64,000 nucleotides of DNA from Dimorphilus gyrociliatus (Eukaryota > Animalia > Annelida): positions 682,001 through 746,000 of the forward strand of contig CAJFCJ010000015.1 of NCBI GenBank assembly GCA_904063045.1, given 5' to 3'. Each line of letters opens with the position of its first letter. The first letter of the stretch is position 1. Below the pieces are notes generated by a model. It was not told where the DNA came from. It worked only from the letters and a program-made list of their open reading frames with translations, and made no database searches. Position numbers and translations under genes: made by a program. This document shows positions 28,207-31,200 of this stretch, piece by piece.

Positions 28207-31200
28207 CTAGACGAAGCGAGAGGCGACTACCAGAGATTGTCCAGTGTTACTGTCGTACTTCAGATTTGAGTAAAAATCCCCTCCGCTATCCAATGCTTGG
28301 GTTTGCCTGTGAATTGAAAATGTAGAAAAATCTTTCCCTTTTTGTTTTTTTTTGGTAAAACAGAAATATTAATTATCATTAGAGATAAATATAGAAATCT
28401 TTTACGTGTGAAAAAAGAGACTGAAAGAGAAAGAAAAGATAAAGAAGGAGAATCTTCCTTACAAAAAAAACGAATGAATTGAATAGATATATTTTCTTTT
28501 AATAAAATATTTGATTTTATAAAACACCCCGTTGAGGAGATGTAGATAGAATGAGTGAGAGAAGGAGTAAAAAAAGGCGCGAAATTTTCCCAATCAGGCC
28601 GGAAGTACTAGAGCGCGAGTGTGTAAACGAAAGGCGGCGTACCTGGATATTAATCTGTGCGTTGCCTGCCTTTTCGCACCCATTTTTGGAATGGAAGGAG
28701 CCCGGGGAACGAAAGTCTTCGGTTCATCAACTTTAACATTCTGTTGGACCCGAGCATGAGCGGCGGCAACTTCGGCTTGGTGTTTAGCCCGGGCTGCCTC
28801 CAGCTCTGTAGCGCTCTCTGTTTGAAGATCAGTGGAGGAAAAAGAGTCTAGCAGATTGTAAGTGTAATTCCTCTGTTGTTGTCGTTTCGATATCCGGTTC
28901 AAAGCGGAGTCAATCTCCTCCTCCCCGCCAACTGTGGCGGAAGAAGGTCTGCCACGACTAAATCCCGTAGTAGGACGTTTTTCTGAACGATAAAAATAAA
29001 CAGTGAGATAGAATAAAGTAAATATATGAACGTCCATATATTTAAAATACGATATATTGTATATAACGGACTCGATCTGCGATAAGGCGTAATCACCTTA
29101 TCAGTTGAGAACTTCCTTCGTTTCGCACGACTGCAGGTGAACGTAGACATAACGAGACGGGTCGTCAAAGATAGATGGGCAGGTTTTAAAGGTCACTACA
29201 TAATTGGCATAAATGGACCGAATTCAAAAAAATAGACTAAATCATCAAAAAAATAAGGTAAGAGTTTAGGAATAAAAAACGCCTTCCTTTCTCAAACAGG
29301 AAGTGCGTAAAGCTTAATAGTAAAGTTCAACTTGTACTTTGTGGCTTTAATTCTATAGGTTAACGTATAATTTCTCCGTGAGTCTACTTACTATAAATAT
29401 ATATAACTGTAGATGAACACATAGATATATATACTTATATATATATATATATATATATATATATATATATATATATATATATATATATATATAAATATAA
29501 ATATAGTTGATATTTATTACGGATATTACAAATATCATGATGTATTATTAATAGACATCATACAGATATATACATTTTTGTATATTGATGTTCCATTTGA
29601 CAAGTCGATTTGTCTTTTAAAAAAAAAAACAGGAAAAAATTCTCTTCAAAGGCATTCTTTCCTTATTATCAAGAAGACAGGTAGAATAAAAGAAAAGAGG
29701 AGACTACGGCAGGGGAAAAAAGGCCGGTCGAGGGAAAAAAAATCTATGTCAATGAGCGAACAACTTGGAAAGTGAATAATATGAAGGAAAAGTCATAAAG
29801 GAAAATTTATACGGATTAAAAAATAGGAGACTTTTTTCAACCTATTAAAAAGATTTTCTACGTTCAGAATAAACCTTGTCTTTGAACGTTGCGGTCTCGT
29901 CGCCATGGGCAACTAGAGAGAGACCCCTGGTTATGTGCCGATGATTTCTCGCGCCGCATCATTCACACTCTGTCAGCCGTTCGCTACGAATATAAATTTC
30001 TCCTCCATAAATTATTCGTCTTCTCTTAATTATTTTTGTATTTGGATATTATCCCAATGATATATCTATATGTACTATACGTATATATTTCGTATTGAAT
30101 AATATGTTTGCGCTCTCTCGAAAAGAGTCGCCCTATGGGATTAGCCAGGCCGAACAATATAACTTTCGATCGACATTTAATGGACGGGAATGTTCTCTTC
30201 TAGCCGAGTGATCAATAGCTTCTAAGAGTAAGAGTGAAAAATTGTTGACCGCTTAAAATCATATTTTATATATATATATGTATATATACATTATATTAAA
30301 AGTTTATCAGATAAAAAATATTTTAATATACCGCCAAAATTTTGGTGTAAACATATTAGAAATTATGTGCAACCAATCGGAATATGTAAATATCCATCGT
30401 TGCACTTCGCAAAATAAATCTATAAATGTATATTTATATATAATCTATGAATATGAAATATAACTATAGATTTGTTTGTATGAATAATATATCTTTAAAT
30501 ATTCTTACAGGTACACGTTTATATAGATGAATATATATATGCCATTTTTTCTAAATATCTATATATAGAGGAGATTAGCAAAGATTGCGAAGAAATGAAT
30601 AATAATTTGACGCCCTCGCGGAGGGGCCTGGCTCGTGCAAATTGGTGTAAAATAGTTACAAATTGCACCTGCCCCGGCCTGCCTTTGCGGCTTGTCAAAA
30701 ATCAACAAAGTGAAGAATTTTAATAATATTCCAAATGGGATATTAAAAAGTATGGAATGAAATAATAAAGTGATAACAATCTCAATCAAGGATTACCCTC
30801 ATCTCTACAAGATCATTGATCTTGTTGAGTCGGCACAGGTTCGGATGGGGTCAATTTGAACAAATAGCCGGATTAAATTGCTAGAAAAGATAGGAGGGAA
30901 GGAACCTTTAAAGGGCTAACAAATTGCACCTGTCCCGGCCTGAAACGGCTCTACGCATCGTCGCTTCCTACAAACAAAACCAACGAATAATCCAATACAA
31001 AGCTATACTGTTTCAAATCGTATGTATGACTCATAAAACGGCCATTGTTATGCAACAAAGCCGTTGAAAACTAACCGTATAGGCTTTGTGCCAATTTTAA
31101 ATATCTGGCTGCAACACTCTGTCTATTTTTTTTTAAAAAAAAATACACACATACTCTGTCAAAAATACACGATTACGTTCTTCTTAAAAACACTCCTTTT

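Follow-up and report, generated by a model that had tools for sequence, protein, structure and literature searches.

A miR-92 microRNA cluster, probably with its own promoter, lies antisense in the putative last intron of a TTLL5-like gene in Dimorphilus gyrociliatus

The window analysed here is a stretch of 64 kb from the 77.9-Mb genome of Dimorphilus gyrociliatus. Its minus strand carries a TTL-domain gene, for which protein searches were run exon by exon: Pfam PF03133 was matched on four exon ORFs (36761-37579), and the nearest solved structure to the domain in PDB searches is that of the TTLL7 polyglutamylase, a weak match. A long extension follows the TTL domain, with exon ORFs from 34996 down to 28594. 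Between what are very probably the last two coding exons of this gene lies a cluster of plus-strand elements, which were compared with their counterparts in a close relative, whose orthologous contig is about 79% identical across the locus. In the order of their positions, the features are:

28594-28982, minus strand: last coding exon of the host gene, a conserved C-terminal module; acceptor AG at 28984-28983
29860-29997, plus strand: conserved GC-rich promoter-like block of 138 nt, with the X-box inside and the TATA-like element at its end
29899-29913, no strand assigned: X-box-like motif GTCGCC-ATG-GGCAAC, an RFX-type inverted repeat with a 3-nt spacer
29991-29997, plus strand: TATAAAT, 78 nt downstream of the X-box; putative transcription start site near 30020
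30050-30245, plus strand: block A, between the TATA-like element and hairpin 1; 95% identity to the relative
30606-30700, plus strand: miR-92-family hairpin 1; 3p arm at 30661-30681
30827-30951, plus strand: miR-92-family hairpin 2; 3p arm at 30922-30942, loop of about 60 nt
30952-31100, plus strand: block B, directly 3' of hairpin 2; 93% identity to the relative
31309-31385, plus strand: candidate third hairpin, family unknown (-27.8 kcal/mol, z -2.8)
31428-31562, minus strand: 135-nt coding exon of the TTL-domain gene with an open frame; donor GT at 31427-31426
36412-37774, minus strand: TTL-domain exons of the host gene, with the gene start near 38218

The interval 28983-31427 has GT/AG borders on the minus strand, and its removal would connect two open frames in phase. 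This junction between the 135-nt exon (31428) and the last exon (28982), a phase-1 junction, is conserved in both species. Compared with the relative, nearly all substitutions in the 135-nt exon and most changes in the last exon are synonymous, and similarity collapses upstream of the acceptor AG. The interval is thus very probably the last intron of the TTL-domain (TTLL5-like) gene, as a preliminary description of this DNA had proposed. With 2.4 kb it is far longer than the median intron of this species, which measures 66 bp (PMC7854359). A second long intron, 31563-32313 (751 nt), adjoins it, indicating that the 3' part of the host gene is generally intron-rich. The public annotation differs from this structure: there, the last exon is kept apart from the TTL gene as a model of its own, DgyrCDS10331 (CAD5121868.1, 155 aa), which starts inside the 2.4-kb interval. 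Its first coding exon is disrupted in the relative by a 2-nt indel that breaks the frame. Splitting off the TTLL5-like C-terminal exon in this way is a probable annotation error.

The identity of the host gene was established in part. The preliminary description had named it TTLL5; the TTL domain bears this out at the level of the family, and the searches placed the gene as TTL-domain polyglutamylase-like without reaching the TTLL5 subfamily, so that "TTLL5-like" is the name used here. When the last exon was searched exhaustively against proteins, the matches comprised the public 155-aa model and two unnamed homologous terminal-exon ORFs of other animals from marine samples (P0004, found on contigs of less than 800 nt, and P0005), with no named TTLL5 and no full-length TTLL protein among them. 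Two further matches of the last exon, an fn3/PTP protein and a repeat protein, were discarded as spurious and repeat-driven. A word search with the 161-aa exon recovered the ORF of the relative only, and an ESM Atlas search with the marine homologue P0005 gave no usable match. The three motifs of the last exon seem to resemble the C-terminus of vertebrate TTLL5.

On the plus strand of the intron, the two miR-92-family hairpins proposed in the preliminary description were confirmed at their positions by their folding, their seed and their copy number. Hairpin 1 folds with -40.5 kcal/mol (z -3.6) and hairpin 2 with about -42 to -43.1 kcal/mol (z -3.1); between 0 and 2 of 200 shuffled sequences folded as well. 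The minus strand of hairpin 2 does no better than shuffles (z +0.1). Both 3p arms share the AUUGCAC seed at nucleotides 2-8 and a 3' half ending in CCCGGCCUG, and these are the sole two such copies in the 77.9-Mb genome. Since it is only on the plus strand that the hairpins and their conserved 3p arms can be read, the cluster needs a primary transcript of its own and cannot come from the host pre-mRNA, exactly as had been claimed.

The pattern of substitutions points in the same direction, judged on the one relative. Hairpin 1 is 98% identical, with one change in the stem (C-G to U-G) that keeps the pair and one in the loop. In hairpin 2 the arms are 94-95% identical and the loop 56%, and the G-U to A-U changes in the stem keep the pairing. 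Conserved arms together with the diverged loop of hairpin 2 form a classic microRNA pattern. At gathering thresholds, Rfam gave no match in the 64-kb window, and E-value scans of 28900-32350 yielded sub-threshold mir-92 matches, weak but specific, and noise only. Hairpin 1 matched mir-92_2 with 21.3 bits and ciona-mir-92 with 17.8 bits, and hairpin 2 matched mir-92 with 16.6 bits (gathering 70, 56 and 47, respectively, for models built from distant taxa); the alignment to the mir-92_2 consensus makes the seed and the CCGGCC core visible. From their sequence, we regard hairpins 1 and 2 as genuine miR-92-family microRNA genes, ordinary in themselves. MirGeneDB 3.0 has a genome-only miRNA annotation for D. 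gyrociliatus, a species for which it records that no small-RNA reads exist (PMC11701709); because of this annotation, both MIR-92 genes are probably already listed there.

Upstream of the cluster, the promoter-like block shows 93% identity to the relative versus 45-55% in the neighbouring AT-rich intron and occurs as a single copy in the genome. Identity falls sharply to 52% at 29998-30049, just before block A. Folding of the promoter-like block as a hairpin was rejected (z +0.15 and -1.3). The X-box and the TATA-like element that the preliminary description had noted here are both present. Within the 64 kb, the vertebrate consensus GTNRCC(N0-3)RGYAAC is matched solely by the X-box sequence, GTCGCCATGGGCAAC, which is also the top site in a graded scan of the window (21.5/22). 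It does not fit the C. elegans 14-mer consensus, and it fits a Drosophila-type consensus on the reverse strand. In the relative, the spacer is changed from ATG to AAG, together with an adjacent base, and the half-sites are unchanged; these 0 changes in 12 positions compare with about 0.5 expected, and the half-sites are no better conserved than the surrounding block. From base composition, and in line with the genome-wide count, about 0.16 loose matches are expected by chance per 64 kb, so that the motif alone is not far beyond chance. At the position of TATAAAT the relative has TATATTA. TATA-type promoters are the rule in D. gyrociliatus, and its intronic open chromatin is carried by long introns (PMC7854359). 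The location of the X-box in a block with 93% conservation, 78 nt upstream of a TATA-like element, makes it plausible that the block acts as an autonomous plus-strand promoter.

Several other parts of the intron are conserved as well. The candidate third hairpin folds on the plus strand (z -1.0 on the minus strand), and the relative carries one compensatory change (C-G to U-A) and one G-U to A-U change, with arms at 86-92% and the loop at 75% identity. It was assigned to no Rfam family and could not be aligned to hairpins 1 and 2; possibly it belongs to the same plus-strand unit. Neither strand of block A folds better than shuffles (z +0.9, +1.1), and the block has no Rfam match. Block B folds moderately (z -2.9 on the plus and -2.2 on the minus strand), and its substitutions do not back the fold. 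Additional microRNAs or snoRNAs in blocks A, B and C were rejected on these grounds, as A is unfolded, the fold of B is unsupported and C contains only a 7-bp hairpin. Block A may represent either the beginning of the primary transcript or a regulatory element. The conservation of both A and B exceeds that usual for pri-miRNA flanks, and the two blocks may thus be regulatory elements for TTLL5 or neighbouring genes. The stretch from the X-box to the last exon holds further conserved blocks (29085-29200, 29250-29350, 29650-29700). A repeat or transposon origin of the intron was dismissed, its sequence being single-copy except for a (TA)n tract.

Taken together, we consider it probable that the locus harbours an autonomous plus-strand miR-92 gene with its own promoter, antisense in the last intron of the TTLL5-like polyglutamylase gene. 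Two MIR-92 paralogues, and possibly an unrelated third hairpin about 350 nt further on, would be nested antisense in their host. The promoter would most likely be the 29860-29997 block, whose terminal TATA-like element, some 610 nt before hairpin 1, would set the predicted transcription start. The primary transcript would span at least 1.0-1.4 kb and include block A, hairpin 1, hairpin 2, block B and perhaps hairpin 3, with the miR-92 precursors presumably processed to mature 3p products. Within the promoter-like block, the X-box may recruit an RFX factor. Transcriptional interference with TTLL5, which the preliminary description had also raised, is pure speculation.

miR-92 is one of the microRNAs that have been proposed as markers of ciliated cells from early bilaterians onwards, and the preliminary description had gone further than an autonomous gene by proposing a ciliary microRNA unit under direct RFX control. 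Of this proposal, the antisense miR-92 cluster is real and has a conserved, TATA-containing block upstream; the RFX link fared less well in genome-wide comparisons. Four loci with an RFX DNA-binding domain (PF02257) score above the cut-off in the genome, and RFX genes are thus present. It is nevertheless a serious possibility that the miR-92 unit has its own promoter and that the X-box is incidental or bound by another factor, with RFX uninvolved. Such a reading is supported by the loose consensus, which occurs 457 times genome-wide against 484 for the control, and by a strict class that is just about 2-fold enriched (29 versus 13 control strand matches) and whose members with identifiable neighbours mostly adjoin non-ciliary genes (UNC80, spatacsin, a GPCR, PP1, an oxidoreductase). 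Upstream of the ciliary genes IFT57, IFT46 (two copies), BBS5 and IFT20, none of the five regions contains an X-box above background. The same holds for other candidate ciliary microRNAs, located by pattern search: the miR-29-like cluster lacks an X-box and the miR-34-like loci have motifs at background level only, by which a shared RFX "ciliary miRNA regulon" was rejected. Moreover, the motif has a 3-nt spacer instead of the common 2-nt form, and conservation extends over the whole block, not just the motif. On the other side, the miR-92 X-box is the best in 64 kb and one of 18 strict sites in 78 Mb, a rare class with at least two further members in or at ciliary genes (EFHC and a CFAP90-like promoter); its half-sites are intact while spacer and adjacent base have changed in the relative, and miR-92 is reportedly expressed in annelid ciliated cells. 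In the literature searched, no paper was found that links RFX or an X-box to miR-92, nor one that describes an RFX-driven microRNA. Recruitment of an RFX factor by the X-box in the promoter-like block, the least supported step of the proposed mechanism, stays doubtful. That miR-92 is wired directly to RFX through a conserved promoter of X-box and TATA-like element and that this unit, consisting of two miR-92 genes and a lineage-specific third hairpin, is kept antisense, such that one RFX site would coordinate or oppose a ciliary enzyme and a ciliary microRNA, appears rather unlikely.

Two other explanations concern the host gene itself. The X-box might serve TTLL5, a ciliary enzyme, by acting as an RFX enhancer within the intron or as an internal promoter, and not the microRNAs, which we regard as quite improbable. 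X-boxes are palindromic and hence without orientation, no X-box-like motif is present in the TTLL5 5' region (38.2-39.2 kb), and the sole strong one of the locus lies in this intron. Moreover, in Xenopus three tubulin polyglutamylase genes, ttll7, ttll9 and ttll13, are direct targets of Rfx2 (PMC3889689), and the long introns with their open chromatin (PMC7854359) would suit an enhancer. The conserved blocks between motif and last exon, and a public model starting within the intron, are likewise compatible with a host-gene role, and the latter matches the short C-terminal transcript that the preliminary description had considered as an alternative output of the X-box. Against this, the reading frame of the first DgyrCDS10331 coding exon is not conserved, which makes a short protein-coding isoform unlikely. 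The orientation of the TATA-like element favours the plus strand, and the minus-strand side of the motif has no TATA. In nematodes and flies, X-boxes are usually no more than a few hundred bases away from the transcription start site on which they act, and the candidate start nearest to this X-box is the plus-strand one. It is also conceivable, yet unlikely, that the interval is not an intron at all: TTLL5 would stop 3 codons past 31427 (at about 31420), DgyrCDS10331 would represent a small gene in its own right, and the position of the miR-92 cluster would be intergenic. The public annotation is modelled in this way, an in-frame stop follows the donor of the 135-nt exon in D. gyrociliatus (TAG) as well as in the relative (TAA), and the 180 nt below the donor (31427) are 80-87% conserved, as a 3' UTR might be; the missing full-length TTLL protein in the exhaustive last-exon search fits as well. 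However, the last exon begins at a conserved AG without a usable start codon of its own, and the annotated upstream exon loses its frame through the indel, whereas the 135-nt exon joins in phase in both species. Furthermore, the motifs of the last exon presumably resemble the vertebrate TTLL5 C-terminus, and the conserved 180 nt are better explained by candidate hairpin 3 with its compensatory change.

Some consequences of the autonomous miR-92 gene are independent of RFX. The two MIR-92 genes now have support from two species, where MirGeneDB has genome-based predictions only; a candidate extra hairpin and unusually conserved non-coding blocks are added in a rare long intron; and a probable error in the public annotation, the TTLL5 C-terminal exon split off as DgyrCDS10331, can be pointed out. 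If RFX should indeed drive the unit, it would represent the first direct transcriptional link found between RFX and a proposed ciliated-cell microRNA, and offer a compact, testable promoter-plus-miRNA cassette of 1.5 kb in an animal with a 78-Mb genome.

Compared with known systems, the locus resembles the RFX/DAF-19 X-box regulon in having GTNRCC-N3-RGYAAC near a TATA-like element in a genome with RFX genes, and in its host, since polyglutamylase genes are RFX2 targets in Xenopus (PMC3889689). It differs in that IFT57, both IFT46 copies, BBS5 and IFT20 lack an upstream consensus X-box and the motif is barely enriched. Vertebrate miR-449 is sense-oriented and co-expressed from its host transcript, whereas the worm cluster, being antisense, must be driven by a promoter of its own; the link of miR-92 to cilia reportedly goes back to annelid in-situ data. 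The likeness to miR-449 (in CDC20B) and miR-34b/c lies in a ciliated-cell-linked cluster in an intron of a ciliated-cell gene (Marcet et al. 2011 as cited in PMC3889689; bioRxiv 10.1101/218750). From the MIR-92 family (miR-25/92; RF00464 mir-92, RF03554 mir-92_2, RF01117 ciona-mir-92, MirGeneDB) the worm hairpins deviate by Rfam scores of 16.6-21.3 bits versus gathering values of 47-70, by CC at positions 9-10, where the consensus has other bases, and by the unusually long loop of hairpin 2 (about 60 nt), although annelids occasionally have very long precursors (MirGeneDB 3.0, PMC11701709). They share with this family the 3p product with its AUUGCAC seed, the clustering of paralogues on the same strand, and arms that are more conserved than the loop.

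The preliminary description had placed two miR-92-family hairpins on the plus strand, antisense to an intron of a minus-strand TTLL5-like gene in D. gyrociliatus, and both were confirmed there by folding against shuffled controls, seed, genome uniqueness and conservation in a close relative. The contigs of this relative (Logan contigs SRR23372228 and SRR23372229; loci L031 and L030) were reached via protein P0006, which clusters with the public protein CAD5121868.1. Within the window, which is C15:682001-746000 of the genome, both align colinearly to 25.7-38.5 kb with about 79% of the DNA identical, the neighbouring TSP1-repeat gene included. 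For the footprint, positions 28400-32100 were aligned to L031, the sequence of this one relative. Coding exons are 86-88% identical between the two species and the AT-rich intron parts 44-55%, the latter being essentially unconstrained. The conserved features of the intron, all single copy in the genome, are listed here with their identity to the relative.

Conserved features of the intron
29085-29200: conserved block, 97%
29250-29350: conserved block, 96%
29650-29700: conserved block, 86%
29860-29997: 138-nt promoter-like block containing the X-box, 93%
30050-30245: block A, 95%, single copy, does not fold
30606-30700 (+): miR-92 hairpin 1, 3p arm 30661-30681, 98%
30827-30951 (+): miR-92 hairpin 2, 3p arm 30922-30942, arms 94-95%, loop 56%
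30952-31100: block B, following hairpin 2, 93%, single copy
31309-31385 (+): candidate hairpin 3, arms 86-92%, loop 75%

Folded as plus strand, hairpins 1 and 2 reached -40.5 kcal/mol (z -3.6) and -43.1 kcal/mol (z -3.1) relative to shuffled controls, and the minus strand of hairpin 2 did not fold above chance by the same measure. The 3p arms of both have the miR-92 seed together with the 3' core, and a search of the 77.9-Mb genome (349 contigs) allowing up to 2-3 mismatches returned no further miR-92-like 3p sequences. Three different mir-92 models of Rfam weakly matched exactly these two hairpins, all below the gathering score. The few stem substitutions in the relative preserve pairing (C-G to U-G, G-U to A-U). 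Because the arms-over-loop pattern, seed, fold and uniqueness coincide, the two MIR-92 genes are secure as sequence-level calls, short of small-RNA reads. D. gyrociliatus is in MirGeneDB 3.0 with an annotation based on the genome alone, and according to this resource the species has no small-RNA reads (PMC11701709), so both genes probably figure there among the predicted microRNAs.

About 350 nt past hairpin 2, a third plus-strand hairpin is a candidate on the basis of its predicted fold (-27.8 kcal/mol, z -2.8; minus strand z -1.0) and one fully compensatory change in the relative (C-G to U-A). It matched no Rfam family and could not be aligned with the miR-92 hairpins. Blocks A and B, which flank the miR-92 hairpins, may be enhancers or else parts of the pri-miRNA that are under unusual constraint. 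A 35-codon ORF lies in block A, and conservation reaches past the ends of this ORF. Block B was considered as a hairpin and rejected, since its fold is weak and the substitutions in the relative do not back it. The blocks at 29085-29200 and 29250-29350 are more conserved than the coding exons, with one stretch of about 80 nt being 100% identical, and matched no RNA family. Within them is a perfect 7-bp hairpin (GATAAGG...CCTTATC), and the first exon annotated for DgyrCDS10331 overlaps with them. A (TA)n microsatellite at 29400-29510 of the intron is not conserved in the relative; it forms a trivially strong hairpin, and the mir-297 matches of Rfam at this place are spurious.

The host gene is recognised by its TTL-domain exons (Pfam PF03133) at 36.7-37.6 kb on the minus strand, from where open exon frames run down to a 135-nt exon (31428-31562) and then to the exon 28594-28982. 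In both of these exons, divergence from the relative is almost purely synonymous. The relative retains the donor at 31427 and the acceptor at 28983, and the junction 31428/28982 maintains the frame in both species (G + AA = Glu, then Lys-Arg-Pro). The last exon begins at a conserved AG, upstream of which similarity collapses, and itself lacks a start codon. In the public annotation (CAD5121868.1, DgyrCDS10331), this exon instead belongs to a separate CDS of 155 aa that starts at about 29147 and splices a small first exon to 28982. This model, without the long intron, is favoured by an in-frame stop after the donor 31427 in both species and by a protein search with the last exon, which retrieved no full-length TTLL protein. 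However, a 2-nt deletion just before the donor of its first exon destroys the frame in the relative, and this exon looks non-coding, being 97-100% identical without any synonymous change, whereas its second exon joins the upstream exon of the TTL gene in phase in both species. We thus regard DgyrCDS10331 (28594-29147, minus strand) as probably an annotation artefact, and the sequence comparison makes it likely that 28983-31427 is an intron of the TTL-domain gene. The long intron of the preliminary description is supported by GT/AG sites and phase in two species and is at odds with the public annotation, which splits off the last exon.

Exon-wise protein searches for the TTLL subfamily returned unnamed ORFs only, and a structure search with the host-gene exons gave a weak TTLL7 match. 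Motifs of the last exon and two upstream exons resemble human TTLL5, a lead and not a test. The same gene has a second long intron of 751 nt (31563-32313, minus strand) with an 80-94% conserved block at 31650-31950 that has no open frame. Between the stop of the TTL gene and the TSP1-repeat gene, 28076-28320 is 91% conserved and is probably 3' UTR. The median intron of D. gyrociliatus measures 66 bp, and the long introns, few in number, often contain open chromatin (PMC7854359).

Within the promoter-like block, TATAAAT (29991-29997, plus strand) lies 78 nt downstream of the X-box, where the preliminary description had seen TATAAA; the relative has the TATA-like TATATTA there. Directly past the block, identity drops to 52% (29998-30049), with a 15-nt indel. 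From this arrangement we infer an independent plus-strand primary transcript that would start about 30 nt past the TATA-like element, near 30020, and pass block A, both miR-92 hairpins and perhaps hairpin 3, before Drosha and Dicer would release 3p-dominant miR-92 products. The analysis directly shows the hairpins, their strand, the conservation and the exon frames; the promoter, the TSS, the reach of the transcript and the controlling factor are deduced from them. Since the unit is antisense to the TTLL5 pre-mRNA, the two cannot share one transcript; interference between their transcription is conjecture. Directly past the X-box, the minus strand of 29922-29936 (AACCAGGGGTCTC) resembles the core of a CTCF motif. 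This stretch is conserved in the relative. The CTCF motif was reported to be the commonest at D. gyrociliatus promoters (PMC7854359).

The X-box itself, GTCGCCATGGGCAAC (29899-29913), is an RFX-type inverted repeat with a 3-nt spacer. It is the sole match to the vertebrate consensus within 64 kb and does not fit the 14-mer form of C. elegans. A graded scan of the window, in which we weighted the published consensus in a crude way and did not use a trained matrix, ranked it first with 21.5 of 22, ahead of the second-best site with 20.4. The evidence on its function is mixed. Both half-sites are intact in the relative, where the spacer reads AAG in place of ATG and the adjacent base has changed as well, and the motif is conserved no better than the block around it. 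Genome-wide, the loose consensus occurs just as often as the reversed pattern used as control (457 versus 484). The strict class (GTYGCC N1-3 GGCAAC) comprises 18 sites in 78 Mb, this one among them, with 29 strand-matches compared to 13 in the control. One strict site is a perfect palindrome, GTTGCCATGGCAAC, which precedes a DUF4532 (CFAP90-like) gene by about 150 nt (L009, C1:1137550), and another falls within the coding sequence of an EFHC (DM10) gene (L010, C1:2085650); most strict sites with identifiable neighbours adjoin non-ciliary genes.

Four loci of the genome encode an RFX DNA-binding domain. In the 0.7-2 kb preceding the first matched exon of the canonical ciliary genes IFT57, IFT46 (two copies), BBS5 and IFT20 (L048-L052), no X-box exceeded background (best scores 16.0-18.1, background median 16.9), and because of this the nematode/fly X-box grammar is not evident in this annelid genome. 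Such missing X-boxes would be unexpected if that grammar held here. Christodoulou and colleagues reportedly found, in 2010, that miR-92 marks annelid ciliated cells. Our literature search found no paper linking RFX to miR-92. Alternatively, a functional X-box could serve TTLL5, as in Xenopus polyglutamylase genes are among the targets of Rfx2 (PMC3889689) and the graded scan of the window revealed no X-box in the TTLL5 5' region; we consider this unlikely. That RFX drives the plus-strand miR-92 unit is somewhat more probable than this, yet still less likely than not. Of the proposed antisense unit under direct RFX control, the antisense position is supported; the RFX step is weakened by the ciliary genes that lack an X-box above background and by the control-level frequency of the loose motif.

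Further loci, resembling the supposed ciliated-cell microRNAs miR-34 and miR-29, were located by sequence patterns.

Other supposed ciliated-cell microRNA loci
L045:5955-6065 (-): miR-34-like hairpin
L046:5953-6063 (-): miR-34-like hairpin, on a separate contig
L047:5735-5840 and 6090-6195 (+): miR-29-like cluster of two hairpins, 355 nt apart

All of these hairpins fold well (z -1.3 to -3.7), and X-box-like motifs at their loci are at background level or lacking.

Neither nested antisense microRNA genes nor MIR-92 clusters are unusual, and MirGeneDB already has the microRNAs of this species in predicted form. What is new is the support from two species for both miR-92 genes, the promoter-like block that is conserved and carries the X-box, the candidate third hairpin, the other ultra-conserved intron blocks, and the probable mis-annotation of DgyrCDS10331.
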